Assembly (NCBI GenBank): GCA_010909165.1
Contig: VJWM01000220.1
Span: 1 to 64,000, forward strand
From: Anthoceros angustus
Taxonomy: Eukaryota; Plantae; Anthocerotophyta
Direction: 5' to 3'
DNA: 64,000 nucleotides
The notes under the pieces are model-generated. The model searched no databases and had not been told where the DNA came from. It was given only the letters and a program-made list of their open reading frames with translations. Below are positions 22,062 to 46,234 of this stretch, in pieces (the first letter of the stretch is position 1; each line of letters opens with the position of its first letter). Position numbers and translations under genes: made by a program.

Positions 22062-22375
22062 CATGTAACATGGTCAGCCACAATTAGGCCCCTCCCGGTC
22101 CACTTGCCCATACACAACAAGCGCCTTTTGCCTCCAGTTCTCCATCATTGGGCATTACTCCAGTTCTCCGAATTTTGCATACAAGACGAGGTGAAAAAAT
22201 CTCTTGTCCCTCGTTGCTTAGCTCTCCCTTCGCTTAGTCTTGGCCAGCTTACTTCTTAGTGTTGTCCTTACCTCTTCCCTTGCTGGTTTCGTCTAAGTTT
22301 TTCTGTGATGATGGCAGAGTTCAGCAGACAAAGCGGGTCCCAGGTTAGAAAATTGGGACAGCAGCAGTACCACTA

Positions 22376-22960
22376 CTATGCCACATACAAGGCCATTGAT
22401 CCGGTGATGGGGTCTGTGCAAGTAGGGCAAGTAGGGTTCTGGTCCCTGTGCCGCTGCATGCACGAGTAATGAAAGCAAGGTAAGACCACGGTGTTCCTGG
22501 CCTCCACAAAGCAGATCTTACACATATTTTTCTCCTGCTCCGCCTCCAGGTCGGACGCAATTTGCTAACGCTCATTCCTAAGGTCAAGTGCAGCCGTTCG
22601 TTCAGAGGCTATATTCTCTCGCCTCCATGCTTTGCAGCTCGGAAACAACTGTTGCATGCCTTGCCTCCTCTCTCCCGCATTAGCGCGGCCTCCTCTCTCC
22701 ACATTAGCGCGGCCTCCTCTCCCTTCCTCATTCTCCTTTTCCACTATCTGCGCCATGGCCATGGTGGAGGAGCCGAGCTCATCAAGCTCCTCCAACTTCA
22801 TCCCCTGTACCTCGCCGCTCGCTTGCCAGGCTTCTGGTTTTCCGCCCTGCATGCAGAGCCTCGTGCAGAGAGACATCCTCCTGCACTCCGTGGCCCCTCC
22901 CAGGAATTCGCCCGTTAGTGGCATTGTCAATTTCACTGTCCCTCCTCCACATCCGATTTT
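22376..22960 (-). pseudogene. Coiled-coil + RING-HC family copy 1 (N-terminus missing, one RING Cys lost)
   Basis: Manual minus-strand translation: DLEAEQEKNMCKICFVEARNTVVLPCFHYSCMQRHRDQNPTCPTCTDPITGSMALYVA*. Upstream GEFLGGATE...EAWQAS...MAMAQIVEKE is shared with the 23.9-kb copy. Confidence 0.85.
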
Positions 22961-23095
22961 CAAGAAGGGAGGGCTTTGCACAAGGAAGGTAGAAGGTAGG
23001 ACGGTATCTCTAAACCTGCAGACCTTTGAGAAGGAAGGTAGGAAGGTAGCTCTAAACCTCCTGCAGGCCTGTGAGAAGGAAGGTTTGTCCCTAAT

Positions 23096-23140
23096 CACAT
23101 GTGATAAGGGATGTGTCACATCTTGCCCTTATCACATGTG
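23096..23140. repeat. Hairpin palindrome with 15-bp perfect arms (also at 62938-62983)
   Basis: cacatgtgataaggg ... cccttatcacatgtg; the loop is itself partly palindromic (atgtg-t-cacat). Confidence 0.95.
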
Positions 23141-23280
23141 CGGGTCTATCTGCGCATGTGCTTGCCCATGTGATTACAGACACCCGCCGCCTATTCATAC
23201 ATATATGCAACGGGTGTCTGTACGCCTCTGCCTTGCATGTAGGTTGAGGATACTGGGCTCTGCATCACGGCTGGCGAGGA

Positions 23281-24065
23281 ATGGCGGATAAGGAGGAGGG
23301 CAGTCTTGCTGCGGAACTGAAGCTGCAATCAGATAACATGCTTGAGGAAAGGCTCGAGTGAGGGAGAAAATTACGTTGGTGGCAAAGGTTGTTAGACACG
23401 GCACAGGGGGTCGAGAAGGGAAAGGGGGTCAAGGATATGAACTTGGAGAAGCAGCTTCAAATGATCCGCAACGACCGCAAAGAGCGTCAGCGCAGCCGAT
23501 GGGGCCTTGCTGCGTATCTGAAGGACCTGTCCGACGAGGAGCTGGTAACGAGGCTTGAGAAACAGAAAAAACGTTTGTGCGAAGCGGAGAGTACATCAAC
23601 TTCCCTGGACAAAAAGCTGAAGACAGAAACCGGATGTAGGAAGGTCATTGCATCCGGACGCCATATTGAAGAAGAATAAGGCCAAGGGCAAGATTCAAGT
23701 CATCCGCAACGAACGCAGAGAGCGTGATTGCAGCCAGGAGAAGATTGAGGCTTCCCAAAGATGCCGGAATGAGGTGGCGGATGCTCACTGGTCTGCAGGG
23801 GTTTAGAGCTACCGTCCACCTTCCTTCCGTGTGCAAATCCCTGGAGTCGTATTCAAGGGAGGAAAATGAAATTGAAGCCATTAACGTGTGCTTGTATTGT
23901 GCATAATTGGCGAATTTTCAAGGAAGGGGGCCACGGAGTTGCATGCGGCGAGGGAAAAACTAGAAGCCTGGCAAGCGAGCGGCATGGCCATGGCACAGAT
24001 AGTGCAAAAGGAGAAGGAGAGCATGAGGATGAGACAGCAGGCCGCGCTGTTGCGGGAAAGGGAGG
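23281..24065 (+). pseudogene. Coiled-coil + RING-HC family copy 2 (RING domain deleted)
   Basis: MADKEEGSLAAELKLQSDNMLEERLE*, then LQMIRNDRKERQRSRWGLAAYLKDLSDEELVTRLEKQ, RLPKDAGMRWRML and EAWQASGMAMAQIVQKE. It joins the shared 3' module without a RING. Confidence 0.75.
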
Positions 24066-24069
24066 AAAA

Positions 24070-25963
24070 GCATGCTACTGTTGGCAGCATCACAGAAAAA
24101 TTAGACAAGACCAGCAAGCAAGGGAAGAGGCAAGCTGGACAAGACCTAAGCAAGGGAGAGCTGAGCAAAGAGGGAAAAAAGGTGTTTCATCTCGTCCTGT
24201 ATAGGCCTGCTCCTCCTCTCCAGCTGGTCTAGGGTACATGCTGGTTTTTTATGAGAGAGGAGCGCTGGCTACCTTGCTTCATGGGCACCTACCCATGACG
24301 AAAGGTAGCCAGGTTTGCTGACATTGTCCTGTTATCCACAAAGTTAGGTGATGCTTTGCAGAGGCTGATGACATTGGTCTGTTGTCGACAAGATACAGTC
24401 TTTGCATACATGTCTCCCGGCTTTGACAGCTGTTTTCAGGAGCTTGCAATGTGCAAAGCCAGTAGCCAAGTTGATACTCTTGTGCTTGCAGACTGGCCAG
24501 CCAGCTGCTATTGCAACGCATCTAGCTAATGTCAGTTGTTGCTTTGTCCAATGGGTGGCCGTCCGAGCCCTTCAGCCTGTTCGTTTACTTGACAAGTCTG
24601 AGTTCTCTTCACACAGCGGTGAACCGAGGAGTGAGACTTTTGGATTGGTTTTGAGTCCGGAGTGCGCAGTCTGCAGGCTTGTGCCATGCCAGCCCTTTGT
24701 TGGTTTGCGCGGGCGCGGCTGGTGCCCTGCTCACCATACCTTTGATAAAATGGTACACTCACATACCTCGGATATGGCACTCGCGTTCGTTTGGCCTTCC
24801 TGCGTAAGGGTAGGTTCGGTGGTTAAACCGCTTGCCCCAGGCATGTTGTGTTGATGGGCAGCTGGTTTCTTTGGATATTCAGATGGGCCATGGTGCGTCG
24901 CCTTCCAATTCGAGCTCTCCGGACAAGCCAGAGCTTGGCGCGTGTGCAGGATCGTGAATGGGCGTCATGGCTCTATGGAGAATGTGGGAGCTTGAGGGAT
25001 GCTCGCAGGGGGTTTGATGGTGTTGCCAGGAGAGGTTGTTTCATCGATGACAGTGATGTAGTTGTTACTGTGCGTTTGTCTAGGGCGGCCGATTCATTTC
25101 AGGTACCGGTGAGATCTCAATGCTGTCTGTACAAGATAATCATGTCACAGTGGGGTTGTCCACGCAGTTACTCGTACGGAGTAGGCCTGCAATATTGGAC
25201 TGCTGAATGGTGAGGATATTTCTTTCCTGTGCAGCGTTTTGCCCTGGTGTGTTGTGAACAGAGTTAGTGATGGGTTTACTGCTTCATTTCTTTCGGGAAT
25301 CATTCGATTTTCGAGGGAGTAAGTGTTGCCAGTTGCTGGCAGCACCACGTTCTAATGTGATTGGTAACTATCTGGTCGACACGTGTGTCCCGCGAAATTC
25401 ACAAATAGAGTCTCTAATGTGGCCTTCAGCCTGAATTGTTTCCCTGGGCTCTTGCTTACATGTATGCTGATTGTGGCAGCATGGTGGACGCACACCATGT
25501 ATTTGAAAACTGACCTCAGCGTGAGAAACAATCCGTATATCGTACGGCTAGTATGTCCCAGAATATGACGGGCTTTCAAAAGCATCGTCATATCGAGCGA
25601 AACACCCTGATACATATCTCATCCTATCGTACCGCACTATTTGCACAAGTCCATTCTTAGAACACTGAGGAAAGTATGCAGGTGGTTCATTCACTCTTGA
25701 GCCTGCAAGAGTATGTGGGTCATTTATCAAATACATGCTGCTCGCGTCCACCCTGCTGCCACATTCAGCATGCATGTAAGCATCAGGCGTGGCAGAGTTC
25801 AGGTTAAGGCCACCTTTGAGAATTTCTTCAGGGTAAAGACCACAATGGAGAATTTACCAAGACCCTTCTGCATGATACCGATGCCAGCTGATTACTTGCT
25901 GGACAAAAGACTTCATGGATAGAAACTGCTAGAGCGCCTCCTCCGGCGGTGAGGCAGGTGTTC
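24070..25963. pseudogene. Shared downstream module with scrambled PLS-PPR relics in both orientations
   Basis: + strand YGECGSLRDARRGFDGVARR (about 24970-25030); - strand MHAECGSRVDA (about 25775) and MYQGVSLDMTMLLKA (about 25615). Homologous blocks at 31180-31590, 33990-34410, 35130-37110 and 61612-62250. Confidence 0.75.
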
Positions 25964-25964
25964 A

Positions 25965-28900
25965 TTGGGAAAAGAGCTGAGCCTTTATAGAGAGGAACAC
26001 AACACTCCCATACAATATGGGTTATATGCACTAGGCACACTAGATACTAGCACACAAGCACACAAGAACACTTGCACACACCACACCTTACAAGTAGGTG
26101 GGCTTGGCCTTATATAGTCCTAGCCTTGAATCCTACTGGTCACTTGACCTTGAATCCTATTGGTTACTTGACCTTGCCCTTTACTTTTGGACTTTCTAGA
26201 AGATACTTTCTAGAAGATACTTTCTAGAAGATGCATGACTTTCAAGTATGTTATTTTAGGGCACTCTTCATAACCTGCTTTTAGGGCACTCTTCATAACA
26301 TATTTTGATATGTTGTAATAAATCACTTCTAACACTCCCACTCAACATATCAAAATTATTCCCTTAGGCCTAGCATCTTGCTAAACCTAGCATGTTTTTC
26401 TAAAGTCAAGGCTTTGGTCAAAATATCTGCCGGCATGTCTCTGTTGGACAATACTCTAGCTTTACCTCTTTTGACTTTACCTTCTCTCTTATAAAGTGAT
26501 GTTTCACTTGATGTGCTTGGTTCTAGCATGAAAAGTTGCATTCTTGGCTAAGAAGATGCAACCTTGATTGTCGTTGAAGATTGTTGTTGCTTCCTTTGCT
26601 TGAATCCCATCTCCTCTAGCAAGTTACGCAACCATATCGCCTCCATGACCGCAGAGCATGTTGCCATATATTCTCAGAGGATAGAGCCACGAGGTTGTCT
26701 CCTACTATTCCATGAAATGGCTCCCCATTCGGCATAAGCGCATATCCGATCGTAGACTTGCGACTATCAACATCTCCGCCCGAATCACAATATCCTACCA
26801 CTCGGACTTCCTGCGATGCTGTTGATACACCAAATTCCAATGCTTTGTACCACTCAAGTACCTCATTATCCTCTTCACGGCTTGAAAGCTGTTGTCCGGG
26901 GTTAGCCATAAATTGACTTGCAACTCCACGCCTCTGCAATGTCGCCTTGTCCTCAGATAAATAGGTGAGGCATCCAACTGCGATAGAGAGTTTTATCTAC
27001 CTTCTCCTTCTCTTCTTGTAGGACTCATCTCCTTTGAGAGCTTCTCATTAAGCACCATTGGTGTCTTCACAGCTTGCACTCTTGCATTCCAAAGCGCTTG
27101 AGGACATTCTCAACATATGTCCTTTGGCTCAAAGAGATCTTCTTGTTAGCCTCTCTCATTACTTCTATCCCTAGAAAGTAATGAAGTTCACCTAGATCCC
27201 TCATATCAAAACTATCATTAAGACTCTTCTTGTACTCTCTAAGAGCTCCAAATCATTGCAAACAAGGATTAGATCATCCACATAGACAGCAATGATCATC
27301 ATGGACTCTCCCACTCTCTTCACATAGATGTTCCAATCTCCATTGGTTTTCTTGAAACCTCTAGCTTGGAAGAACTTGTCAATCTTAACATACCGGTAAG
27401 TGCAGTTGCTTAAGACCATAGAGTGCCTTTAGCAATTTACATACCTCACTTTCGCCCGGCACTTCATACCCTTCCGTTGGTTCATGTAGATCTCTTCTTC
27501 CAAATCTCCATTGAAACGCAGTTTGGACATCCATGTGATGTATCTCCGGATCCATGGTAGCGCTATTGCTAAGAGTATACGAATGGATGTTATCTTAGCA
27601 ATGGGAGAAAGTGTCGGTGTAGTCAATACACGCTTGTGTATATCCCTTCCCACCAGCCTTGCTTTGTATCGCTCTATGCTCCCATCAGTTGTGCTTGATC
27701 TTGAACACCCATTTGGATCCTATGCACTTCCTTCCTTGGGGTAGAGGAGTGATTTCCCAAGTCTTGTTCTTGATAAGTGAGTTATACTCACTATCCGTGG
27801 CTTCTTTCCACTCCTTCGCCTTTGGCCCTTCCAAGGCTTCCTTCAAGCTTTGCGGCTCATCAAGATCCGCCAACATAGCCTCTTCGTACTTGCATGCATT
27901 CATGGACTCCAAAATTTTCTCGAAGGTTTCCATCGCCTTGATGATCTCGATCGGGTGACTCCTCTTGGATTCTTGATCTCGCTCCTCTTCATCATCCTCG
28001 ATATCCGGGCTTCTCCACCTTCTATATCACCTTGTGGTAGAGGTTGCTCATGCTCGGGAACAGTTGAGCATGCTCAAGAGTAGGTTGCTCAAGAACCAAG
28101 TCTTGTGCTTCTTCACGCTCCTTCAACTCCTTGATGACAACTTGCGTTGCTCCCACTCCTTTGTTAGGTTCCACAACCTCATGAAAAACAACATCCTCGA
28201 AAATGATTTTCTTGGTTGTAGGGTTGTATAATCTATACCCTTTACCTCATCGAATACCCAAGCATGATGCACTGGATGCCTTTAGGATCCCACTTGGTTC
28301 GGTTTTGCTTTGGAACATGAGCATAAACCTCGAACCAAAGATCCTAAAATGACTCACGTTAGGTTTGACACTGACCATGCCTCCTCCGGTCATTCCAGTC
28401 TGACCTTGGTTGGAACTCTATTCAAAACATGAGTTCTGTAAGACCTCTCCCAAAACGTACCTCCAACCCACTTTGATGGAGCATGCACTTGGCCGCCTCC
28501 ACTAGGCTCCTTAGCTTGCGCCCGCCACTCCATTTTGCTCCGGTGTGTGAGGAATTGTTAGTTGCCTCCGAATGCCATGCTCCTTGCAAAAGCTTTTGAA
28601 TTGAGAAGAGATGTATTCTCCTCCATTGTCACTCCTAGTCTTGAGGCATTCTCCACTTTCGTTCTCCACCAAGGCTTTCCACTCCTTGAATGTCTTGAAC
28701 ACTTGGACTTCTCCTTCAAAAGGTATGTCCAACTCCTCCTTGTGAAGTCATCCACAAACACTAGAATGTAGCGGGCTCCTCCATGGGTAGGGTTCTTCAT
28801 TGGTCCACACATCGGTGTGTACAAGTTCCAACGCCTTCTTTTCGGCGCTCCAATCCTTGGGAACTTGGTTCGGTGAAGCTTTCCCATCATGCACCCTTGG

Positions 28901-30846
28901 CACAATCGCGGCTCACCAATATCTTTCAAATCCAAGCCGGTCACCATTTGTTGATTCTTCATCATCTTGATGTTGTCCACTCCAGTGCCCCAAGCGTTGA
29001 TGCCACAAATCTATTGACCCAGTGCTCTTAGGCGAGCTTGACACAAATGTGCAAGCTTGTTGATCACCTACGCACACACAACTTGTAGAGATTGCCTTCC
29101 GAACACCTCGAGCTATCACCTTGACATTAGGTGATTACGGTTGCTCGGGTTGGATCGACATCCTCGAGTTGAACACAATCTCATTCCGGTCGTGATTCTT
29201 GCTCGAAAGAAGATTCTTAAGACCAGCACATGGTGTACATCCTTGATTGTACCTTTGGATGGTCCTCCAGGGAGTTGAACTTTAATCACACCTCTTCCTT
29301 TGATCTCGTGTGACCTATTGTCTCCAAGCGCCACTTTATGCCCCGCCGGCATTTCTTCATAGCTTGAGAACCAAGGCCGATTGTAGGTGAAGTGTTGAGA
29401 TGCTCCAGAGTCGAGGTACAAACTCTCATCCTTCTTTGATGGGAGTTGTCGTACTCTTTCTACGGTTGAGACAGCGAAAAGATGTTCTTCCTTCTCACTC
29501 ACTTGATTGGCTTGTGACTCCTTTCCCTTCTTCTTCAAGTCAGCCAACCTTGTCCTACAATCCTTGGCATAGTGATTAGGCTTTTGCAATAATGGCAAGT
29601 ACCCCACACCTTTTCTTCGCACCTTTTCTCCTTGATCCTTCTTGAGTTGGCTTGTGAAGTCTTCCCACGTGTTGTTCCCTTCTTTGAGAAGAGCACCGAG
29701 TCTCCATTCTCTTCTTTCTTGAAGGAATTCTCCAGCTCCTCTTGTAGGAGCAACCCAACCACCTCATCCAACGTTGGTGGTTGGTCGCTTGGACGCATCG
29801 CTACCGACGTTCTAAAGGCCAACACAAATTGCTTGTATGCGGATGGTAAGCTACTCAGCAACACCACGATAACCTTTCTTCAAGGTTTGACGTCCGCCGC
29901 CTTCATTTGATCCACCAAGTTCTTCAACTTGTTGACGTGTTGTTGAATGGTGTCACCCTCGACCATCTTGAAGTTGGCGAATTGTTGCTCCAACAACATC
30001 TCATTCACCAAGCTCTTCTTCTCATACGTGTTGCAGAGGGTCGTCCACGCCGCTTTTGATGTTGCACACTCACTCAATTGAGAGAGTATGTCATCGGACA
30101 CATTGAGGAGAATCGCCGCCGTCCATCTTTCTCGGTGTCCACTTGGTGGGTGTTTCTCGAGGCCATTGTCGACAAACTTCCATAGTCCTCGATCGATGAG
30201 AAGCATCTTCAACTTCCACAATGTGAAGTTTGTGCCTCCAAACTTCTCCACTAGACGTGTCTCCATGCTTGTTGACGCCATGCCTAGTTTCCCTACAATT
30301 GATCTTGAAGACCAAAGCACCTCACTCACATGCACTACAAGATTAGTATCAAGACCTTTCCAATTGCACACAAGTTCTCACAAGCTCTAGGCTAAGAACT
30401 ATGCAATAGGACTTGACTCAAGTAACAATGCAAGGGGCATTCTATAAGGCTCTTGAACATGGCTCTATTACCATAAAGGAAAAGAGCTTAGCGTTTATAG
30501 AGAGGGAACACAACACTCCCATACAATATGGGTTATATGCACTAGGCACACTAGAAACTAGCACACAAGCACACAAGAACACTTGCATACACCACACCTT
30601 ACAAGTAGGTGGGCTTGGCCTTATATAGTCCTAGCCTTGGATCCTACTGGTCACTTGACCTTGAATCCTATTGGTTACTTGACCTTGCCCTTTACTTTTG
30701 GACTTTCTAGAAGATACTTTCTAGAAGATACTTTCTAGAAGATGCATGACTTTCAAGTATGTTATTTTTAGGGCACTCTTCATAACCTGCTTTTAGGGCA
30801 CTCTTCATAACATATTTTGATATGTTGTAATAAATCACTTCTAACA
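25965..30846 (-). mobile_element. Ty1/copia element E, full length (about 4.9 kb), relatively young
   Basis: LTRs about 25965-26334 and 30474-30846 with only a handful of differences; TSD tgttc (25959-25963 / 30847-30851); PBS tggtaatagagcc; PPT gagtgggag. Gag VEKFGGTNFTLWK, protease YLDSGASQH, integrase VDDFTR/SDNGGEY/PEQNGVA, RT AVYVDDLI, RNase H ADILTKAL. Confidence 0.97.
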
Positions 30847-31590
30847 TGTTCAACTCGTAATGCGCATCTAACCAGCTTCCACATTTAGTATACATGTCAA
30901 TACCAACAAACAAGCAACAAAAAAAGTGTTACCAACAGACACATTTGAATCGAAGTACTCACAAGCAGCTTCGACGTTGACCCTCTTTCGCTTTTCCAGA
31001 CAGGTTACTTTGATGTCCTGCCCATCCACGACCTCAGATTACTCCTGATAGGCAGGATGTTCGCAGGGCTAAATGTTGGCAGCTTAATGCATAAATGCCA
31101 TCATCTGGACACGTATCTTGTCGACGACCGCCTCTTCCATTGAGTGGTGGGCAACAGACCCTAAAGCTTCGATGCTGGAATGGGAGTACAAGAGGTGAAG
31201 CATGGTGAGTACAAGCAATCACAAAACCTACCTTTCTCGAATCTCAGCAAGAACTGACATCATCAGCAGGCACAAGAGTGGCAACTTTACTGGCTTTGCA
31301 CATTCTAGTCAAGCTCGTAGCTAGAATTATTGGAATGTAAGCAAACTCATTGCCTTTGTTCATAGCTCCCTTATCAATCAGCTCCTAGTATGGCTAGAGA
31401 GAAGCAGCAAGCCTATACAGGACAAGGTGAAAAATTCTTCTCTCCTCGCTGATTAGCTCTTAACTTGCTTGTGCAGATTTGTCGCTGGCAGAGTTTTCGC
31501 AAGTTGCAACACAGCCAGTCCCAGACTCAGACTGGGAGAATTGGGACAGCACAAGTTGCCCTAACACATAGATTAGGATCCGGTGGCACT
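30847..31590. pseudogene. PPR relic (interrupted by copia E) and inverted copy of the shared downstream module
   Basis: Minus strand VGIDMYTKCGSWLDAHYE at 30850-30913; 31180-31440 is the reverse complement of about 34090-34410. Confidence 0.75.
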
Positions 31591-31594
31591 ACTA

Positions 31595-32755
31595 CTATGA
31601 CACGAACACTGCCATTGATCCGGTGATGGGGACTCTGCAAGTAGGGCAAGGAATGGCCCGGTCCAGGGCCCGCTTCATACACGACTTGCACAACAGGAAA
31701 TGAAAGCAAGGTAAGACGATGCTGTGCCTGGGCTCCACATAGCAGACCTTGCACATACTCTTCTCCCGCTCTGCCTCCAGATCCTGACGCAGCGTGTCCC
31801 TCTCGGACTCAAGTTCCACAATCTGATTCCGATGCGTATTCCTACGGGTCAGCGCATCCCTTCGCGCAAAGGCTATACCCTTTCGCAGCTCGGCGTTCTC
31901 GTCCTCCAGCCTCCGCCGCTCAGCAGCGACATGTACAGCGGCATCCCTTGCCTCTCTTCTTCCTCACCTTCTCCTTCTCCTCCTCCAAAATCTGTGGCAA
32001 GCTCATGCCGGCGGACGCGCGTACAGCAAACCCCTCCATCTTCAGCGACATCCCTTTTACCCAGTCACTGCATTGCCTGTCCTCGAGCGCTTCCCCGCCA
32101 CATGCGACGCCGCCTGCATACAGGCACGCACCCGTGGACCCCGGCCCATCGTCTAGATTCCCCAATTCTGCACAAGACAAGTTACACAATGGCAATTTGT
32201 CTCTCCTCCGAAGTCGGAGTCGGTTTTGCATAAGGATCTCTAAACCTGGAGCCTCAGCTCTCTGCTCCTGACTGCGCTCCCGCTCTCTGCGCTCGTTTTG
32301 GATCACGTCGATCTTGCTGATGGCCTGCTTCTTCCTCCATGCGGCATTCGCGAGCACGGCTACCGAATCGTTTCTGGTTTGCCTGACCAATGCCGACAAC
32401 TTCAATATCGCGGACGCACACCACAAAAGCCTTCCTGCTCCTGGAGCCTCTCCTCCAGCTCCTTGTCGGACACCTGCCTCAGGTCCGCAGCCAGCATAGC
32501 CTCCTCCTTAGCCTGCGTGTTCTCCTCCGGATCCTCAGCCAACCTAGCCACCTCCTCAGCCTGTCTAGCCTCCTCATCAGCCAGCCAAGCCTGGTACTCA
32601 GCGCGCCTACCCTCCTCCTCAGCCAGCCTAGCCGCCCTCGGAGCCTTCTCAACTACCTTGGGTAGCCTAGCCTGCAGCTTGTTCATAGCTAGCTCGGCCT
32701 CTGCGCATGCCTCAGCCGCCATAGCTGGCCTGGACACTTCCACACGTCCCGCCAT
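31595..32755 (-). CDS. Coiled-coil + RING-HC (C3HC4) protein, putative E3 ubiquitin ligase; family copy 3 (about 2 frameshifts, possibly sequence errors)
   Basis: Three successive ORFs: MAGRVEVS...MLAADLRQVSDKELEERLQEQE; KQAISKIDVIQNERRERE; and intact RING CKVCYVEPRHSIVLPCFHFLLCKSCMKRALDRAIPCPTCRVPITGS. Shared leader and aATGGCGG start context. Confidence 0.75.
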
Positions 32756-33075
32756 TCTTCGCTACCAGCTTGCAGACCCAAGTGCGTTCACGCTCCCTTG
32801 CATGCAGAGGTGGAAGAGAACTTGGTTGGATGAGAATGACTTTGAGACACACATGGGAGCGTATTTATAATAAGAGCAAGCGTTGCTATACCCTAAAGCA
32901 AGGGCAGGGTACCGAGGCATCGTCCCACGCTGGCGGCTGGCCTTGATGATCGAATATCGAATATAAAATATCCAACCGGAACGGAGTATGCCATACAAAC
33001 CAGCTCACGGCATGGCTTGGTTTATACTAGCGTGAAAGGTGAGGATACTGGGCTTTGCATCGTGGCTGCCAAGGA

Positions 33076-34413: not shown

Positions 34414-34455
34414 CTGTTGTGAATTCCACCAAGCTTGTGGTGGAATTCACAACAG
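34414..34455. repeat. Palindrome with 18-bp perfect arms
   Basis: ctgttgtgaattccacca-agcttg-tggtggaattcacaacag. Confidence 0.95.
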
Positions 34456-36344: not shown

Positions 36345-37110
36345 TTCCCTTTTGCACACATGTTACTTTGATGTCCTGCCCGTCCACGACCTCAGATTAC
36401 TCCTGATGGGCAGGATGTTGGCAGGGCTAAATGTTGCATACATGTGAGCAAGAGTCCAGGGAAACAATTCAGGCTGAAGGCCACATTAGAGACTTTGTGA
36501 ATTTCTCGGGACATACGTGTCGACCAGATAGTTACCAATAACATTAAAACGTGGTGCTGCCAGCAACTGGCAACACTTCCTCCTCGAAAATCGAATGATT
36601 CCCGAAACAAATGAAGCAGTAAACCCATCACTAACTCAGTTCACAACAGACCAGGGCAAAACGCTGAACAGGAAAGAAATATCGTTACCATTCAGTAGTT
36701 GCAGGCCTGCTGCGTACAAGCAACTGCGTAGACAACCCCACTGTGACATGATTATCTTGTACAGACAGCATTGAGATCTCACCGGTACCTGAAATGAATC
36801 GGCCGCCCTAGTAAATCGCACAGTAACGACTACATCACTGTCATCGATGAAACAACCTCTCCTGGCAACTCCATCAAACCCCTGCGAGCATCCCTCAAGC
36901 TCCCACATTCTCCATCGAGCCATGACGCCCATTCACGATCCTGCACACGCCAGGCTCTGGCTTGTCCGGAGAGCTCGGATTGGAAGGTGACGCACCATGG
37001 CCCATCTGAATATCCAAAGAAACGAGCTGCCCATCAACACAACCTCCCTTGGGCAGGCTGTTTAACCACCGGACCTGCCCTTACGCTGGAAGGCAAACGA
37101 ACGCGAGCGC
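35130..37110. pseudogene. PPR-relic module, largely inverted relative to 24780-25920
   Basis: 36440-37110 is the reverse complement of 24780-25465; 35130-35310 is the reverse complement of about 25720-25905; 36170-36435 matches 25920-25963 plus 30850-31080 without copia E (empty site). Confidence 0.8.
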
Positions 37111-37177
37111 GTCTCCGAGTCACATGAGCCACTCGAACCGTTAGATTCAGCACAAAGGTGACGACTACTGAATGGCA

Positions 37178-37490
37178 GGTACTAACACACAAGCACACTT
37201 GCACACACCACACCCTACACCTAGCTGGGCTTGGCCTTACATAGTACTCAGCCTTGAATTCTATTGGTCTGTTGATTTTTCATGTGCTTGAATCCATCAC
37301 TTGGCTTTACCATCTCTTGGGCTTTCTAGAAGATACATGAGTTTCTAGAAGGTATACATATTTGTAATTTTAGCGCACTCTTCATAACCTATTTTTAGGG
37401 CACTCTTCATAACCTATTTTGATATGTGGTACCAAATTATTTCTAACACTCCCACTCAACATATCAAAATTATTCCCTTAGGTCTAGTAT
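37178..37490 (-). mobile_element. Truncated copia fragment related to element E (3' LTR, PPT, last codons of pol)
   Basis: Matches 26045-26375 (e.g. ttagggcactcttcataac x2, ttctaacactcccactcaacatatcaaaattattcccttagg) but is more diverged than E's own LTR pair. Confidence 0.85.
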
Positions 37491-37970
37491 CCCTACGCTC
37501 CTTGCGCATCGCTTGATGCTTGGCCTCAGCCTAGTTCTTGGGCGCAAAAGCCTTCCAGCCATTTGTTGACTCCAATGCCGAGAGAAGTTGTTTCTGCTCC
37601 TCGAGCCTCTCCACCAAAGAACTCGCTGGATGAGCCTTGGGCGTGAAATCCTCTCGCTGCCACGCCCGAGCGCCCTTGTAAATTAGTTGAAGCTTGTTCG
37701 TGTCCTGCTCCTTCTTCAATATGGTTCCTCCTCTCCTCTCTTGTGTAGCCAAGACCGCTAAATTGCTCTTGTTCGCCTCCTCTCCCAACGCGACAAAATT
37801 TTTTCCCCGCCTCGACCTCCCTCCTCCTCCCCGATGCTCCTTTAGCTCATCGTCACCTGTGCCTTTAATCTCCACAATGTACTTATGTTTCCATACCCAT
37901 AGAGTGTTCTCCTCCAACTCCTCGTCGAGTTCAAGTTCGCAGGCAGATTCACCTCCCCTTCACCTACTAT
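37491..37970 (-). pseudogene. Coiled-coil + RING family copy 5 (5' half only, start codon ATA)
   Basis: Leader tgggctctgcatcgctgctgcaaaggaATA, NLPANLNS, DTNKLQLI, LVERLEEQKQ; reverse-complement homologue of 45040-45545. Confidence 0.7.
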
Positions 37971-38267
37971 TCCTTTGCAGCAGCGATGCAGAGCCCAAAA
38001 GTATCACGCATTCTCTTTAAAAAATGTCACGCTGCGATGGTTACATATTACAATCGCTATATATTACAGTCCACTACTTATTGCGATCGCTTCACACGAT
38101 TAAAAGCTTATATAGGTATATACATACATTAATTAAGTATACTGGTAGTTGACAAAGAACCAGACACACATGAAATTACCAGGAACCCGAAATTGACATG
38201 CCTAGTAGCCGCAAGGATTCAAAGGACTTTTAAATAAAATAATAAGAATTAATTTTGAGGTTTTTAT

Positions 38268-38460
38268 TAATGGTCGGATGAATTTAGAGACTGATTTTTA
38301 TATTCTGTATGATGAGTTTAGAGAATGATCTAGACCATAAGGCATCATGCTTTAATTAATGGTCCGATGAGTTTAGAGAATGATCTAGATCATAAGGCAT
38401 CCTCTTTTGATCCAATGTCTCATGACCTTAGAGAGTGATCTAGATGATGAGGCCTCCTCT
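38268..38460. repeat. Degenerate 40-57 bp tandem repeat (homologue at 44475-44885)
   Basis: atgagtttagagaatgatctagatcataaggcatc recurs about 4 times in each location. Confidence 0.8.
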
Positions 38461-40171
38461 CATCCGTTGTCCCCATGTTTTAGATCATGAGAAGTCCTGT
38501 TAAGTGGGGAATAATTTAATGGAAGGGGCATGCGCCTTAGGTATGGGCTTAGTCTCGAGTATGCAAAGACTTGTTAGAACAGGCCATGGTGTTTGATCTT
38601 AGAAGCTAGAGGAACTGGAAGGCTCAACTTGGGTCCGGTACAAGAACCCAAAGCCCATATTCGTGAGGCAATTGGTGTAGAAGCAGCTTGAGAGAGAGAG
38701 CGTGAGAATCGACCTCCGAATCACCGGATCCAAGTCTCTCGGATCGAACCCACATATTTCCACGTGGGATAAGTGTGGCCACCGGGCTAGCTGGGTGACC
38801 GGAGCGAACCCACCACAGTTTTGAAAAAGCAAGTTTCCTTGCTGGAGGACAAGCAGCTAGGCATCACTGTCTTTCCTTGTCACAAATAGCGCCGTAGCTT
38901 GTATGATTTTTAGTGGTGTTTGTTTGCATGCATGAGTGTATGTGAGAGGTTGAGTGGCACATCAGCCTTCTTACAAGAAGAAGAAAGGCCTAACCTCGCT
39001 TAGTTTTGTAGGTCCGGCTGAACCAGTAGTCTTGAGCGAGAGCCTGGAGGAGGTTAGAACCAAGATCCATACCCACATCCCATGTGCACTCTTCATGACC
39101 TCTTTTGATATCATGTTGTACTTAATCATTTCTAACATCTTGGGGCACCGTCCTCACTCATGTGTGGCCTCGGAGTGAGATTACTTATTTTATAAAGGTG
39201 GCCTTGAGGCGAGATTACTTGTTTTATAAAGATAAAACAAATCATCAGTAACTACCTCATTTCCGCACTGTGGGGTATTGACCCGAGTAGATAGAGGTAG
39301 GTAGAGAAAGGTTCCTACCTAGTTTGAAAGATTACTAGATATATTATTTTTATATTAAATATTTGATTTATTCTCACTTCACCTCCCTTCGCTCTCTCAC
39401 GACGCTTGAGGGTCACACTCGGACCCTCTATATCTATGTACCTCTATATACCTACCGAGGTCAGGTGACCATCATCTATGATTGGAGGTCTCATTGCTTT
39501 GTTAGACTTCAAAGCTTGGAGTCCAAAAGAAGAAGAAATAAATGCAACTCAAAAGAAGAAGAAATGTATTATAGTTAATCCACTAATTATACAAGGACAA
39601 ATGACGAGATATCATGGGACTAAAATGAAACAATTTACGTATGTTGGAACAAAAATGTAGAACTAGTTACCAACCACTCATAATATATAATTTTAATAGA
39701 TTCAATTTTGAAAGATAAAATCTTCATATCAATTTATAATATTCCAAGTCACCGTCCCCGCCTTCATGTTATAGGTTAATGGGTTAATGATTATCGAGAA
39801 CTTATCAAAGCCTCATACTATATATGGAGGGTTCACATCAATTAATGCATCCTTGTTTTGTCTTCCCTCTTATTTTTTATCCAATTAAGGAAAAACTAAA
39901 TCTCGAATACAAGTATCGTTATACAAACACATTTCACGGAGGATCGGCACACATCAAGGAAGCATTTGGAGAAATTGGAACATAATCATTCAATCTTCCA
40001 AGTGCGAGGATACTTGCGTTTGCAATCGCGGTCGTGGTCAAAACGTCATATTTAAATTCAGATTCCGTCATATTTTAATTCTAATACATCAAATTTGTTA
40101 ATGTATTGCATGTCTGACTTGCATGCAGGCCTGCTGAGGATACTCTACATTGACATTGCCGCTTCTGAGGA

Positions 40172-41292
40172 ATGGCGGATGAAGTGGAGGTGAACTTGGC
40201 TGCGAACTTGAAGTTGTTGTGCAGCCGAATTGCGTGGAGATGTTGAGGAGCGGTCAAAAGTTACTGGAATGGGAGTCGAGATGGTCTTGGGTGGGTCGGA
40301 CGAGTTGGCCAATGCGAAGCAAGCAATGGACAAGCTTCATCTTATCCACACCGAACTCAAAGAGCGTGAGACAAGTCGGTGGTGCCTGGCTGCATCCCTT
40401 AAGCTCATGTCCGATCAAGAGTTGCTGGAAAGCCTTGAGGAGCAAAAAAACAATTTCAAGCTCGAAGAGCAAAAAGAAACTATTTGGGGCATGGGGATCT
40501 CCGCTTTCCAAAAGAAAGCCAAAGAGAAAGCTAAATTAAGGAAAATGGAAGCTAAGGATAGAATTGTAATCCAACGAGCGCAGAGCGTGAAGATAGAGCT
40601 TGAAAAGATTATTCAACCTCCGGTTCGCCTCCCTTCCTTTGCAAAATGGACTAGCACTCGAATGAGCTGAGACAATGTCATAAACTTGTGCTTGCGTTAT
40701 GTAATTGGTGAATCTAGAAGACCCAACATGACGGGGCCACAAAATTGGTGAATCAAAAGGCCCAGGCGGAGCCTCTGGGAGAGAGAAGAAGAGCAAAGGT
40801 GTGAAGAGGAGGAGAGAGAAGAAGAGCAAAGGTGTGAAGAGGAGGAAAACGCTAAATCGAGAGGCAAGAGATTTGGCTTTCCTTGCTAGGATCCGGGAAG
40901 GGTGGAGAGAGAGGGGCCCTCTAGATGCCCTTGAGAGTTTTACAAGAAAACATTATGTTTTATTGAGGATATCATTTCCAGGCAAAGTTTGAAGGAGGAG
41001 AGGAAGCAAGGGATATGGCCGTCACTACCACACTCGACGCTAGAGGAGGAAAACGCTAAAGAGAGAGACCTTAGACTCACTTGAGTCCGACAGGAGACTC
41101 TACTTGAGGACCTCAAGGCAATGCTCGGAGAGTTAGAACCATATATAATCGAATAATCGCTTTGAGCAAGCCAGAATACATTATCTTACCTTGCAATCAT
41201 CTCTACTTTGCAACAAGTGCAGCATGAGACATGATGCGTGCCCCACTTGTGGACTTCCCATCAACGGGACAATGGACTTGTATGTGCCATAA
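40172..41292 (+). pseudogene. Coiled-coil + RING-HC family copy 6 (full length, disrupted)
   Basis: MADEVEVNLAANLKLL..., KQAMDKLHLIHTELKERETSRWCLAASLKLMSDQELLESLEEQK, and degenerate RING ...ILPCNH...CNKCSMRHDACPTCGLPINGTMDLYVP*. Confidence 0.82.
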
Positions 41293-41731
41293 TATATAGT
41301 GCTCATGCTATTGTCCCAATATTTTTGAGATTGGGAGCCACTGTGTGTTGAAACCCTCATGCAATATCACCCGAGATTACTCTTGTATAAAGTAGTAAAT
41401 GATTGGAACATCATAGAACAAAGTAGACGAGAGTAGGAAGGGAATAGTATGTAGACTATTAAATAGCCTATAGGAAGGGAATAGTATGTAGACTATTATA
41501 TAGCCTTTTACTTCATGTGTAATTTTTCACAACCTTTTAGGTCCTTAAATAGTCCACTCACATCTTATCGACATAAGTTGGAAAGTCATCAAATAAGTCT
41601 CCAACCTTATGTATCTCCTATATGCATCTCTTATATGTCTTATAGTCGCCGCTTTATATATCGCTATTATATATGACTTGTAGTATTGCCACCATTATAT
41701 ATTGCTATCAAATCTATTATGTGCTCAATTA

Positions 41732-43736
41732 AGGAGGAAAAGAACTCAATCGAAACTTGATCCCCGGGTCAAAAATAGATCGCCTAAGCGAAACCCGTGA
41801 TAGGGTGTAAGGCGCTCTAAATGGAAGGAACCCACCTTCCTAGCAATAGAGAATATGACGTCCGGACGGCATCATGCGTGAGCGATCGCCCACTTGGGAT
41901 GAGCCAAGTGTGTCCCAAAGTCATTGAGAGGGGCCGCAGAAGTTGAAAGAGAGCAAGCTAGAGGATGGACCAAGCTCGAGCGAAAATGCATCATGGATGG
42001 AAAAAGTTGCCGTGTGATATGGAACTGAATCGGGTCGAGCCGGTGAACCCGCCCTTCCCCGAGCAAGAGTGGAGACAGGCCCAGTGAGCCTAGGAATGGC
42101 GGAATCTCGAGGAGGGCCAACCGCCCTGCCTGACTGCTTCTCCGTGAGGGACGCTGCCCCGGTGCCCAACCTCGGAAGCGAGGAAAAGACGCATGGCAAC
42201 CCTTGTCTCGGAGGATAAAGAGTCCTGCTAATCTTAGCAAGGCCTACATGGGAAAAGTCCCCTGCTCAACGTCCGCGACAAAAGCCTCAGGATATGTGAA
42301 TACAAAATTAAGAAACGGAGGACAAGATGGGGTAGAGAGCCCAGCTCCTAAGAAAGCCTCTAGCCCAGAGGCCTCGTGGCCAGCAAACCAATGCCTCCAA
42401 AAGCAACGGGAAGGAACGCTCAAGATCCCCGGGTCAAAAATAGATCTAAGCGAAACCCCGTTGAGTGTGCTCTCTAAATGGAAGGAACCCACCTTCCCTA
42501 GCAATAGAATATGACGTCCGGACGGCATCATGCGTAGCGATCGCCGCCCACTTGGGATGAGCCAAGTGTGTCCCAAAGTCATTGAGAGGGGCCTCGCAGC
42601 AAGTTGAAAGAGCAAGCTAGAGGATGGACCAAGCTCGAGCGAAAATGCATCGCGATGGAAAAAGTTGCCGTGTGATATGGACGCTGAATCGGGTCGAGCA
42701 GGCGTGAACCGCCCCCCGAGCAAGAGTGAGGCAGGCAGGTGAGCCTAGGAATGGCGGAATCTCGGAGGAGGGCCAATAGCCCGCCTGCACTGTCTTTCTC
42801 CGGAGGGGCCTGAAGCCCCGGTGCCCAACCTCGGGAAGCGAGGAAAAAGGCATGGCAACCCTTGTCTCGGAGGATAAAGAGTCCTGGCTAATCTTAGCAA
42901 GGCCTACATGGGAAAAGTCCCCTGCTCAACGTCCGCGACAAAAGCCTCCGAGGATATGTGAATACAAAATTAAGAAACGGAGGACAAGATGGGGTAGAGA
43001 GCCCAGCTCCTAAGAAAGCCTCTAGCCCAGAGGCCTCGTGGCCAGCAAACCAATGCCTCCAAAAGCAACGGAAGGAACGCGCCGTCAAGATCCCCGGCCG
43101 CACACTCAAGGTGCCCGGGCCGATGATGTCGCCTAAAACCCCGCATAAGCCACTTGTCGAAATTCCTTAGGCTAGATAAGAATACCGGGAGGGGCAACCG
43201 TCGGAGAAGGTACCACAGGCCGGAGTGCAAAACAAAGGAGAGGATCCCAAATGCCACTTGCGGGTCTCCTAGTTGAGAAAGGTCGCCGATGTGCGCTAAA
43301 TCCTCAGCCAAAGTCGCGTCCACATAATCCTGGGTGAAGGCAGGAGGCCCAATCGGGACACCAAGAACCCGAAGCCCCGGCAGAGAAGCAATATCCCCCT
43401 CCGGATACCGAAGAAAGGGCACAACGCCAGAGGGAGACCAAACCTTACACTTAATGATTTTAACCTTCAAATCGAGGCAGATAGCTCTAAAACGAAAAAA
43501 TCAAATGCCACCTTAAACTTGTCTTTAGCCCCGAGGATATGGATATCATCGGCCACAGACGGATACAAACATTCTCACACTGAAGAGGCAGTTGAAGACA
43601 AAGCCCTGAAATGCACCATGGCAACAAGAGCACCCCCTAGGGGGCCACCTTACCTAGTGCCCGTCGCCGAGCTCAGCACAGAAACCCCTTCCACCGAGGG
43701 GCCATGCTGATAATAGAGGTTGGAAGGAGACCCATA
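41732..43736 (-). mobile_element. Non-LTR retrotransposon fragment, RLE-type (CRE-like): RT, thumb and CCHC region, with internal 665-bp tandem duplication
   Basis: Manual translation SSATGTR*GGPLGG (GxRQGDPL motif), SVADDIHILG (YxDD motif), KCKVWSP, LRVLGVPIG; downstream C...DFGTHL...HDAVR. Flanked by direct repeat tgctcaatta (41722-41731 / 43737-43746). Confidence 0.82.
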
Positions 43737-44513
43737 TGCTCAATTAGAGAGATGAAGTTTTGGTAGAAGAAGTGCCATAGCTTTTATGTCTAGAAGTTTG
43801 AGCCAGTTCAAAAATTGTAATGGGGGCCTTTTTCAAAGATAGGAGTTGCCTTTGTACCTCTTATTGTTTTCCTTGTACATGGTGTAATGATAATAATGGT
43901 CAATTGGTGGGCCTAGAAGCCTCTAATTGTTTTCCTTGTACATGGTGTGATGACGGCGAGTTAAGGCTAGGTGGGCCTAGAAGCCTCTTGCCTCCAGTTG
44001 TGGTAGAGTTTTGAGAGTGCCTACTTTGCATTGGTTTTAGTTATATCATGCAATAGAGTCCGGTCATTTACATCTCCTATGTTGACCCCTTGTTACATAT
44101 ATAATCCCAACCCGTACGTGCCTATTTCTACTCCACCAAGGGCGTTGCTATGAACTATTACCATTAACGAACCGCTCTTTGTCTAGGCTGGAGACTCTCA
44201 CAATTCTTAGATAACTCGCAGGCAACCCAAGTTCCTCTATTACCTGTTCTAACAAATCTTTGCGTAGTTCTTTGATAACCGAGGAACCCAAGTTCCTCCA
44301 TTGCCTATTCTAACTAATCTTTAGTACATACGATGCCCCTCCCATTAAACTATTCCCCATTTAACAGGACTCCTCATGATCTAAAACACTTTTTAACACA
44401 TCGACATGCCTAGTAGCCGCAAGGATTCAAAGGACTTTTAAATAAAATAATAAGAATTACTTTTGAGGTTTTAATTAATGGTCCGATGAGTTTAGAGAGT
44501 GATTTTGATATAT

Positions 44514-44766
44514 GTCCAAGCGAGATGGGGAATCCCATCTACCCAAGACCGAGGAGGAACAACCCAAAAGGGCTAATAGTAAAGGGAAGTCCTAGTCCTC
44601 AGATGCCTTTCCCATAACTACCCTGCACCATGGATATCGTGATCGGGGATGATGGAGGGCCTACCTATCACCGGTGCCAAGAAGCCGCTAGTCCTGCGCA
44701 TGTAGCCATCCTATAAGCAGTTAGCCAGCGTCATAGGCTATGGAAAGGGAGAAAGCCCTGCAGACC
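44514..44766. mobile_element. 253-bp insertion of unknown origin with 12-bp flanking duplication
   Basis: attttgatatat at 44502-44513 and 44767-44778; the paralogous site at about 38295 is empty. Confidence 0.7.
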
Positions 44767-45096
44767 ATTTTGATATATTGTATGATGAGTTTAGAGAATG
44801 ATCTAGATCATAAGGCATCGTGCTTTAATTAATGGTCTAATGAGTTTTAGAGAGTGATGTTTGACATGTTGTATAATGAGTTTAAAGTTCCGGTTCCTTG
44901 TAATTGCATGTCGGTTTTCTCGGTATATATAATTAATGTATATATATACCTATATAAGCTTTTAATCCCTGTGAAGCGATGGCAATAGGTAATGATGACG
45001 TAATATATAGCGATTGTAATATGTAACCGTGGCAGCGTGACATTTTTAAGAGAATGCGTGACATTTTGGGATGCATCGGCGTGATCACGTGAGGAG

Positions 45097-46110
45097 AATA
45101 AGCGCGGAGTGAAGGAGGCGAATCACTGCGAACTTGAAGTCAGCCTACGAGGAGTTGGAGGAGAACACTGTGGGTATGGAAACACTAGTACTGAGGAGAT
45201 TAAGGGCTGGGTGACGAGTGAAGGAGCACTGGAGTATGAGGAGGGAGGTCGAGGAGGCGGGAAAAAAGTGTATCATTGGGAGAGGCTGGCCGAACAAGGG
45301 CAATTTCTGTCTTGGCTACACAAGAGGAGAGGTGGGGGAGCCATATTGAAGACGGAGGCCACGAACAAGCTTCAACTCATTAGCTGGGCGTGGCAGGGGA
45401 GGGATTGCTGCCCTCCAGCCGGCAACTGTCAGCGGTGGTGGAGAGGCTCAAGGCAGAGCAACTTCTCTTGGTTTGAGACGGCCTGGAAGTCTTTTGCCCA
45501 AGAGCCAGTGAGGCCAAGCTTCAAGCGATCCGCAAGGAGCGTGGGGGAGGCTCAACCATGAGCCGAGTCGACCTTCCAAAAGAAAGTGGCATGAGATGGC
45601 GGATGTTCTCGGTTTGCAAATTTATAGCTCTCTTCATACGCTCTCAAAGGAGAGTCGACCTTCCAAAAGAAAGTGGCATGAGATGGCGGATGTTCTCGGT
45701 TTGCAAATTTATAGCTCTCTTCATCGCTTCAAAGGAGAGTCGACGCCATTAAGGTTTGCCGCCCTCCTTGAGCTTGTGCGTGCGAGCATGTCTCTCTTGC
45801 AGGCGTCGCAATGCTTCTTGCATGCGTGAGGAGAGTGGGAAATTAGAGAGGCAAGGTAAGGCAAGGGATGACGCTTATTGCGGAGATGGATGGACTCAAC
45901 TCTTGCTTTTTGGCCATGGCGGAGCTGGAGAAGGTAAGAAATCGACAGAAGAAAGGTGACACTGTTGGAGGAACGGAGGTAGGTGTCGGTGCCAAAGTGG
46001 GAGCTTGAGGAGGACAACAAGCCGCCGAGAATGCCCAACGACGGCTTAGCCTTGAAGTGAATCGAATGACTGGAGGCGAGCAGAGAAAATCAAACTCCGC
46101 CAGCATCTGC
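45097..46110 (+). pseudogene. Coiled-coil + RING family copy 7 (degenerate, no RING seen)
   Basis: EATNKLQLI and RVDLPKESGMRWRMF (duplicated, about 87-bp unit, gagtcgac junctions), matching RLPKDAGMRWRML of copy 2; followed by the shared downstream module at about 46130-46234. Confidence 0.7.
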
Positions 46111-46234
46111 GAAAATGGGACGACACCAGAAGGGAAGAGCTAAGCAACAAGGGAGAGAAGATTTTTTTTCAGGCACTTCCCTCTCCCGCCTAATTAGAGT
46201 ACGGGTTTTGTATCGAAAGGAGAGTCGTTGATCA

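Follow-up and report, generated by a model that had tools for sequence, protein, structure and literature searches.

In known amplicons, the arms are more than 99% identical and are kept so by arm-to-arm gene conversion, and the genes they carry are intact and expressed, usually in reproductive tissue. Among plants, ORF162 is a multicopy, male-specific RING gene of the Marchantia V chromosome. In PMC9261002, ORF162 is described as a unique gene of this repeat-rich chromosome. A second kind of system is the plant E3-ligase or multigene birth-and-death cluster, as in RING, F-box, and MATH-BTB arrays, and tandem duplication among plant RING genes is described in PMC11720228 and PMC13667170. The locus presented here lies in a 64,000-nucleotide stretch of the Anthoceros angustus assembly (contig VJWM01000220.1, hereafter the window, to which all coordinates refer). 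The copies observed there, together with their orientations, defects, duplication structure, PPR-like relics, and neutral-looking substitution pattern, probably represent an ordinary, largely dead birth-and-death cluster of a lineage-specific small E3-ligase-type gene.

Copies of the RING gene and their defects

Self-BLAST, tBLASTN, and copy-versus-copy BLASTN place seven copies or fragments of one gene, encoding a coiled coil and a C-terminal RING-HC domain, between 22.1 and 46.2 kb in the strand order - + - + - + +; c62 (62.3 kb, minus) and c63 (63.1 kb, plus) bring the family to nine in the window. An earlier sequence-only reading had listed eight copies; all were recovered at their positions by the same searches, which also revealed a ninth, c63 (a fragment at 63.05 kb), and a RING remnant of c40 that had been overlooked. 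The limits given to the array, 22062 and 46234, coincide in self-BLAST with the edges of flanking Copia-type blocks. The strand order also bears out the description of units meeting head-to-head and tail-to-tail; alternating orientation is by itself not significant (at least five of six switches, p = 7/64). The array sits in a TE-rich, gene-poor setting. The copies and the features next to them are as follows.

22179-23205, minus: c22, 5'-truncated RING copy without leader and N-terminal modules; RING region 22345-22588, Cys5/Cys6 stretch gone, in-frame stop shared with c62; 3' module ends at about 22183, cut by the adjoining TE block
23227-24527, plus: c23, leader, ATG at 23281, two N-terminal helical modules, and middle part; RING segment deleted; 3' module (T) at 24082-24527
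31120-32790, minus: c31, 3' module 31120-31595, coding region 32755 to 31595; RING-HC intact (31598-31819); upstream of the RING, at least two frame breaks and a 21-bp repeat expansion (32477-32657); leader diverged in the leader alignment
33027-34402, plus: c33, leader, ATG at 33076, stop at 33981, 3' module to 34402; every RING ligand present, with a 1-bp frameshift within the RING and three more frame switches needed
37186-37491, plus: LTR-like fragment truncating c37, 74-78% identical to the Copia LTR
37491-38142, minus: c37, 5' half only (leader and two modules); start codon ATG changed to ATA in the leader alignment
40113-41323, plus: c40, leader, ATG at 40172, N-terminal module ORF 40230-40670; RING remnant 41164-41323 with the first Cys pair (Cys1/2) missing and a stop inside
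41759-43470, no strand assigned: unrelated repeat between c40 and c45, with a 660-bp tandem duplication and a 166-aa ORF for which Pfam gave no match
44923-46167, plus: c45, without RING; 87-bp tandem repeat at 45565-45744; 3'-module piece 46129-46167; TE block from 46233
61791-63049, minus: c62, 95%-identical duplicate of c22 with a complete 3' module (61791-62191); Cys5/6 lost, same stop as c22
63052-64000, plus: c63, 98%-identical duplicate of the c23 tail (24047-25006), without the 5' 840 bp of c23 and without RING; runs off the window end

A RING is kept in any form by five of the nine copies and is complete in two, c31 and c33, which are the only ones to retain all eight zinc ligands. 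Defects were read from three-frame translations and the leader alignment, and the structural defects in seven of the nine copies are beyond explanation by sequencing error. If the 1-bp frame breaks of c31 and c33 are assembly errors, these two could encode working ligases.

From its N-terminus, which is short and acidic, the encoded protein continues into two helical '..KLQLIRNERKER..LSDEEL..' modules and a coiled coil, and it ends in a RING-HC of the zf-C3HC4_3 type. The RING of c31 matches Pfam PF13920 (zf-C3HC4_3) at 47.8 bits against a cutoff of 27 (E = 1.3e-12), and an intact copy would be expected to act as a RING E3 ligase. The common 5' leader that had been proposed is confirmed by the leader alignment and by motif counts, with TGGGCTYTGCATC occurring 3 times against 0.31 expected and GGAATGGCGG at positions 23278, 33073, and 40169. 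In an exhaustive search of 1.84 billion representative proteins, the best match had E = 2.6e-13 and identities were 31-38%; the relatives are distant and come from Adiantum (a fern; MCO5587573.1), Psilotum (a transcript), Mesotaenium (ME000405S06992), and Marchantia (Mp7g19010). No close relative of the family was found in public protein sets, these 1.84 billion proteins included. A word-index protein search with the c31 RING piece and the c40 N-terminal module was blank, a result whose meaning is limited by the length window of that search. The closest relative found in Marchantia, Mp7g19010, has a locus name that points to chromosome 7 and is, by naming convention, presumably autosomal. Literature searches on the RING family, on Mp7g19010, and on RING arrays of hornwort sex or accessory chromosomes returned nothing specific.

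The 3' module, the spacers, and the PPR-like relics

Most of the genes are indeed followed by a common 3' module about 430 bp long, as had been claimed: alignment finds it after c22 (cut short), c23, c31, c33, c62, and c63, and c45 is trailed by a short piece of it only. The PPR relics that were thought to make up this module lie instead in the tail-to-tail spacers beyond it. Neither Pfam nor a PDB search gave any PPR similarity for the module itself. Its minus strand was also considered by eye as a DYW-domain relic ('GRHVCKDC'), a candidate that was dropped after phmmer against PDB returned nothing. The spacers contain the following features.

24767-25467, plus: segment A, with PLS-PPR-like relic LYGECGSLRDARRGFD at about 24971-25036
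25719-25901, minus: segment B, with PPR-like relic AYMHAECGS on the minus strand
25968-30846, minus: Copia LTR retrotransposon inserted in segment X; LTRs 25968-26334 and 30478-30846, 98% identical
30847-31078, minus: segment X, with PLS-PPR relic FVGIDMYTKCGSWLDAH; continues at 25921-25967 across the Copia
34414-34455, no strand assigned: perfect hairpin with an 18-bp stem, just outside the c33 3' module
34706-35001, plus: full-length 7SL (plant signal-recognition-particle RNA) gene in the c33/c37 spacer
34916-36347, plus: tandem duplication, 712 bp x 2, 99% identical, holding B' and X twice
36436-37119, minus: segment A', inverted copy of A with the same PPR-like relic

The relics are of the PLS type ('..IDMYxKCGS..DA') and lie 0.25-1.5 kb outward of the 3' module. 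A strict PLS-PPR motif has 10 matches against 0.5 in shuffled sequence, corresponding to three independent segments (A, B, and X), each of which has the '(L)IDMYaKCGs.edA..vF' helix-loop motif characteristic of PLS-class PPR proteins. In the PDB, segment A is matched best, and segment X exclusively, by synthetic PLS-PPR proteins, with whole-sequence E-values of about 1e-5 that reflect one short motif matched against several repeats, single stretches not being significant. In the Atlas, segment A has PPR clusters as neighbours (0.90-0.92). In Pfam, ten spacer and 3'-module pieces searched at E <= 1 and another ten searched at E <= 10 gave no PPR, E-motif, or DYW match, and a word-index protein search with piece A was blank, again within a length window that limits its meaning.

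The two tail-to-tail spacers have inverted pieces in common at 85-96% identity. Segment A matches 36436-37119 in inverted orientation at 92% identity and has a duplicate at 63762-64000; B is 85% identical, inverted, to 35131-35309 and 35844-36022; and X is 87-93% identical, in direct orientation, to 36169-36436 and 35457-35631. Both junctions of the Copia carry a copy of the target TGTTC(A), which the paralogous empty sites have only once, and this places the insertion after the duplication of X. A TATA-like box precedes the 7SL gene by about 35 nt, and a TTTT run follows it after 12 nt; the surrounding sequence gave no match to the plant Pol III upstream element TCCCACATCG. One simple palindrome centred at 32.9 kb was tried for the two spacers and does not fit: the X pieces share one orientation whereas those of A and B are opposed, and c23 is not closely related to c37. 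Overall, spacer pieces are 85-96% identical compared with 64-76% for the genes that they flank, so that a single simple duplication history is insufficient: either later conversion took place, or the spacers were duplicated again, or the genes evolved faster.

That the spacer pieces are more alike than the genes might also suggest that the units are transposon cargo, spread by a Pack-MULE- or Helitron-like element that captured RING and PPR fragments, with A, B, X, and the distal part of T as parts of the element. Indeed, the distal 138 bp of the c33 tail (34267-34402) are 96% identical, inverted, to c31 at 31189-31326, so that an inverted repeat flanks the c31/c33 pair, and the perfect hairpin stands just outside it. 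However, this repeat was rejected as a pair of transposon TIRs: it has no sharp end and no target-site duplication, and its first half is ordinary 3'-module sequence. Because this half aligns with the 3' modules of other copies, the repeat is a gene tail and not an insertion. The array has no transposase or helicase ORF, and A, B, and X are confined in self-BLAST to two spacers within the window, leaving the capture of these fragments by an element an improbable origin.

Inverted and direct duplication in the growth of the array

A large duplication in the window is direct. As detected by self-BLAST, it comprises the following.

8110-25006, plus: first copy of a direct segmental duplication; second copy 46405-64000

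The duplicated block is at least 17 kb long with 89-98% identity and a period of about 38-39 kb, and it contains nested Copia-type elements and the c22/c23 pair. It appears to be the latest growth of the array. The copy at 62.3 kb, counted by the sequence-only reading as a further array member, is therefore not an independent one, being the 95%-identical copy of c22 inside this duplication.

Spread by fold-back duplication, also proposed from the sequence, holds in part: inverted duplication is supported at the locus, but direct duplications are also visible. On the inverted side, c22 is a 5'-truncated partner of c23, abutting the c23 leader within about 25 bp and sharing pair-specific middle segments at 86-89% identity, and c37 and c45 are inverted relatives with 76% identity over 650 bp. 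On the direct side, the closest relatives often have the same orientation, as seen in c23, c33, and c40 for the 5' part and in c22 and c31 for the RING. The locus looks like an array grown by both inverted and direct duplications and not like a maintained amplicon.

The analogy that had been drawn with sex-chromosome amplicons can be weighed against the same data. Were the locus an amplicon or palindrome maintained on a non-recombining chromosome (sex or accessory), gene conversion between the arms would keep its RING genes functional. The alternating orientation of the copies, the inverted tracts at 92-96% (138 bp in the c31/c33 tails and 700 bp in A/A'), and the TE-rich, gene-poor setting would fit such an array. 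However, the gene bodies are 64-76% identical, far from the arms of known amplicons (>99%), seven of the nine copies are structurally dead, RING-region dN/dS is about 1, the tracts of high identity (138-700 bp, 92-96%) lie in spacers and not in genes, and the latest duplication is direct. On these grounds the analogy fails, and a maintained amplicon is very improbable.

Divergence and selection

The paralogues are clearly diverged, as had been stated: gene copies are 64-77% identical, with RING segments at 64-77% and 5' parts at 38-74%. A comparison of dN/dS among the copies, which had been suggested as a check, was carried out. In the RING region the Nei-Gojobori ratio is close to 1 (0.76 for c31-c22 and 1.07-1.15 for c31-c33); in the N-terminal module dN/dS is 0.28-0.59, a trace of past constraint. 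Since the RING values are about 0.8-1.15, no purifying selection is seen in this region. Substitution counts by codon position are flat (20:18:16, 30:34:27, and 9:9:8), and over the 107 codons compared between c31 and c33 no codon position stands out.

Recent duplicates carry about as many 1-bp indels as substitutions (9 versus 12; 8 versus 8), from which it follows that the assembly probably carries indel errors. Single frameshifts are accordingly untrustworthy, and some copies may be more intact than they appear. This bears on the possibility of a live, fast-evolving E3 family, in which c31, c33, and copies elsewhere are functional, the breaks are assembly errors, and a dN/dS of about 1 or more reflects diversifying selection, as in immunity or conflict ligases. 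A ratio of about 1 with zinc ligands kept would also fit diversifying selection, and all eight are kept in c31 and c33 in comparisons with a dS of 0.3-0.5. The indel excess implies about 3-5 spurious 1-bp indels per kb, enough to account for all of the breaks in both copies; a conserved leader and the low dN/dS given above for the N-terminal module point the same way. Nevertheless, the c31/c33 substitutions do not favor any codon position over the 107 codons, public protein sets hold no protein of the family, and most neighbouring copies are dead. A live family is unlikely. A still broader proposal, a conflict-driven, rapidly turning-over hornwort-type E3 family with live c31 and c33 and further copies beyond the window, in which the frame breaks are assembly errors and inverted duplication and short-tract conversion generate variants with a dN/dS of 1 or more and preserved zinc ligands, possibly on an accessory or sex chromosome, is very doubtful.

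Origin and significance of the cluster

Returning to a largely dead birth-and-death cluster, its history probably began with an ancestral RING gene adjoining a PLS-class PPR gene. The RING and PPR pair would then have been copied repeatedly as a unit, with inverted duplications producing the head-to-head and tail-to-tail pairs and direct duplications adding to them; the block of at least 17 kb with its period of about 38-39 kb would represent the latest direct event. Later, short tracts were probably exchanged between copies, for example the 138 bp at 96% in the c31/c33 tails, Copia and other elements invaded, and the copies mostly decayed.

If this ordinary reading is right, the value of the locus is mainly one of annotation, in that it contains a lineage-specific RING family without close database relatives. 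It also warns users that 1-bp frameshifts in the assembly are unreliable, and it provides a worked example of cluster growth by inverted and direct duplication with a PPR relic carried along. The locus would gain greater weight if copies were live and fast-evolving, or if the family were confined to a sex or accessory chromosome.

Comparison with known systems

At the level of the protein, the window family resembles streptophyte proteins with a coiled coil and a C-terminal RING-HC, in which the coiled coil likewise runs straight into the RING. In alignment, both have the RING signature ExE(R/K)(E/D)K..CxIC...PR....LPCxHF.YC..C...CPxCR.P(I/V).G, with 21-38% identity over about 100 residues. 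In contrast, protein searches recovered the two helical modules at the N-terminus of the window family neither in these relatives nor elsewhere. At the level of the array, the locus shares multicopy genes, inverted orientation, and repeat-rich DNA with sex-chromosome amplicons and Marchantia ORF162, but its arm identity is low and its copies are decayed. With plant birth-and-death clusters of E3-ligase and other multigene families it shares diverged local paralogues, many pseudogenes and fragments, TE insertions, and a mixture of direct and inverted duplications. It differs from these clusters in that the family lacks a close protein relative, nearly all copies here are defective, and the unit of duplication includes a PPR relic besides the RING gene.

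Layout of the Array

Self-comparison of the window shows that 8110-25006 recurs as a direct repeat at 46405-64000 with 89-98% identity. Nested Copia-type elements (with Pfam matches to gag, integrase, and RVT_2) make up this duplicated block together with the first two RING copies. Self-comparison also shows a set of weakly similar segments, in either orientation, between two TE blocks, one ending at 22061 and the other starting at 46233. By tBLASTN with ORF pieces and copy-versus-copy BLASTN, a single gene was resolved in nine copies or fragments, named here by kb position:

Copies and fragments of the RING gene
c22: 23205 to 22179, minus strand
c23: 23227 to 24527, plus strand
c31: 32790 to 31120, minus strand
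c33: 33027 to 34402, plus strand
c37: 38142 to 37491, minus strand
c40: 40113 to 41323, plus strand
c45: 44923 to 46167, plus strand
c62: minus strand, duplicate of c22, 95% identical
c63: plus strand, duplicate of the c23 tail, 98% identical, without the first 840 bp of c23

All eight copy positions proposed in the sequence-only reading are correct and its observation of an array is largely right; c63 and a RING remnant of c40 (41164-41323) are additional. There is a small probability that the RING units are transposon cargo, but a limited search within the window found no transposon termini around them, and no transposase ORFs were found either. At 900-2600 lies an array of ~110-bp repeats (70-79% identical), GC-rich and purine/pyrimidine-skewed, that yields long Pro/Ser/Leu-rich ORFs and more likely represents a simple repeat than a gene.

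Gene and Protein Family

Three-frame translations reveal a gene layout that is consistent among copies. A conserved leader ending in GGAATGGCGG (leader alignment) precedes an N-terminus that is short and acidic. Two helical modules follow ('..KLQLIRNERKER..LSDEEL..' and '..IQVIRNERRERE..'), then a coiled coil, a C-terminal RING-HC domain, and a shared 3' module of ~430 bp (3'-module alignment). The RING of c31 is a zf-C3HC4_3 domain (Pfam, E = 1.3e-12). When 1.84 billion representative proteins were searched exhaustively with HMMER, the closest relatives of the c31 coiled-coil/RING piece proved only 31-38% identical (best E = 2.6e-13), and the named matches are hypothetical proteins of Adiantum (a fern), Psilotum, Mesotaenium (an alga), and Marchantia (Mp7g19010, 162 aa). 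When aligned, these proteins show the family's RING signature along with the coiled coil leading into it. They lack the N-terminal modules, for which a separate word-index protein search returned no relative. The family is thus a lineage-specific branch of an ancient group of small coiled-coil RING proteins in streptophytes. In c31, a 21-bp (7-codon) repeat has expanded to about five copies at 32477-32657 (minus strand), within the N-terminal coding region, and gives an Ala/Glu/Arg-rich coiled-coil stretch that other copies lack.

Inverted and Direct Duplication

The array had been attributed to fold-back duplication, and several relationships do support inverted duplication. The 5'-truncated c22 begins about 25 bp from the c23 leader, and the middle segments of these two copies, 86-89% identical and including a 45-bp repeat, are absent from all others. 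Likewise, c37 and c45 are inverted with 76% identity over 650 bp and have a lost start codon in common, while pieces of the two tail-to-tail spacers (c23/c31 and c33/c37) are inverted relative to each other: identity is 92% for segment A, 85% for segment B, and 96% for the 138-bp distal stretch of the 3' module. Fold-back is nevertheless only part of the mechanism, as other features point to direct duplication, namely the repeated block found by self-comparison, which spans at least 17 kb, the direct orientation of segment X between the spacers, and the frequent closeness of same-orientation copies (5'-part identity of 59-64% among c23/c33/c40 versus 38-49% to other copies; RING identity of 76% for c22/c31 versus 71% for c31/c33).

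The spacer pieces are 85-96% alike versus 64-76% for the genes they flank, an excess that would require later conversion, re-duplication of the spacers, ectopic gene conversion by other paralogues, or genes that evolve faster. A Copia element at 25968-30846 (LTRs 98% identical) is flanked by a duplicated TGTTC(A) target, and its paralogous sites are empty. Its insertion into X therefore came later than the duplication of X. The polyprotein frame of this young element is heavily fragmented.

Smaller duplications are also present. Just upstream of c37 and c45 (38192-38531 and 44333-44858) lie short pieces with 90-94% identity, one of them inverted and others direct. They include a 55-bp tandem repeat and probably stem from a small repeat or a MITE-like element, not from the RING unit. 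Six two-copy tandem duplications of 0.66-1.5 kb (18596/20106, 34916/35626, 41759/42424, 50286/51062, 55367/56288, and 57428/58477; 86-99% identity), several within Copia elements, make the density of kb-scale local duplications in these 64 kb unusually high.

PPR Relics and Other Spacer Features

In the two tail-to-tail spacers, the PLS-class motif '(L)IDMYaKCGS.eDA' survives as three short, independent relics:

PPR motifs in the spacers
24971, plus strand, segment A
25775, minus strand, segment B
30895, minus strand, segment X

Further copies of these motifs occur at 35.2-37.0 kb and 63.97 kb. Matches to a strict PPR pattern number 10 versus 0.5 in shuffled sequence, and the Atlas clusters nearest segment A are PPR families. 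Synthetic PLS-PPR proteins are the best PDB matches of A and the sole ones of X, with whole-sequence E-values that derive from a single short motif aligned to several repeats. These spacer results uphold the earlier claim that a PPR relic travels with the RING unit. The relic was misplaced, however: it sits 0.25-1.5 kb beyond the 3' motifs to which it had been assigned, and the 3' module has no PPR or DYW signal in Pfam or PDB searches.

The c33/c37 spacer also contains a full-length plant SRP (7SL) RNA gene at 34706-35001 (plus strand; Rfam RF01855, 127 bits versus a cutoff of 105), with a TATA-like box about 35 nt before its start and a TTTT run 12 nt beyond its end; a 712-bp tandem repeat duplicates its last ~85 nt. 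In the distal 3' module of c33, an imperfect hairpin of ~82 nt (34299-34380), inside a tract 96% conserved in c31, is followed by a perfect hairpin with an 18-bp stem (34414-34455). Folding of 34260-34470 gives z = -3.8, and neither hairpin matches an Rfam family at a meaningful score.

Decay and Selection

Only c31 and c33 of the nine copies keep all eight zinc ligands. The RING stretch with Cys5/Cys6 is missing from c22 and c62, which have an in-frame stop in common and lack both the leader and the N-terminal modules. The entire RING segment is gone from c23 and c63, the first Cys pair from c40, and c45 has no RING. In c37, an LTR-like fragment truncates the gene after the second module, and ATA stands in place of the ATG. 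These defects cannot be sequencing errors. Frame breaks require more cautious reading, since recent duplicates show nearly as many gap events as substitutions (9 versus 12 for c22 at 22179-23205 against c62 at 62056-63049; 8 versus 8 for the tail of c23 at 24047-25006 against c63 at 63052-64000). With about half of the 1-bp gaps in homopolymers, we infer an assembly indel error of ~0.3-0.6% per base, equivalent to some 3-5 spurious frameshifts per kb. At least two frame corrections are required for c31, and four for c33.

Where pieces of the coiled-coil/RING region are frame-consistent (dS 0.3-0.5), the Nei-Gojobori method gives dN/dS of 0.76 for c31-c22 (differences by codon position 20:18:16) and 1.07-1.15 for c31-c33 (30:34:27 and 9:9:8). 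There is thus no sign of purifying selection in the RING region among copies within the window. The N-terminal module, with dN/dS of 0.28-0.59 at dS of 0.6-1.8, still shows a trace of earlier constraint.

Comparison With Known Systems

The array had been likened to the amplicons of sex chromosomes, with possible sex linkage or selfish behavior. Literature searches covering the family, Mp7g19010, and hornwort RING arrays on sex or accessory chromosomes returned nothing specific. The defining feature of such amplicons is near-identical arms with intact genes, and in this respect the array differs. The reading as an amplicon, as sex-linked, or as selfish is unsupported. The pattern is the one shared by plant birth-and-death gene clusters.
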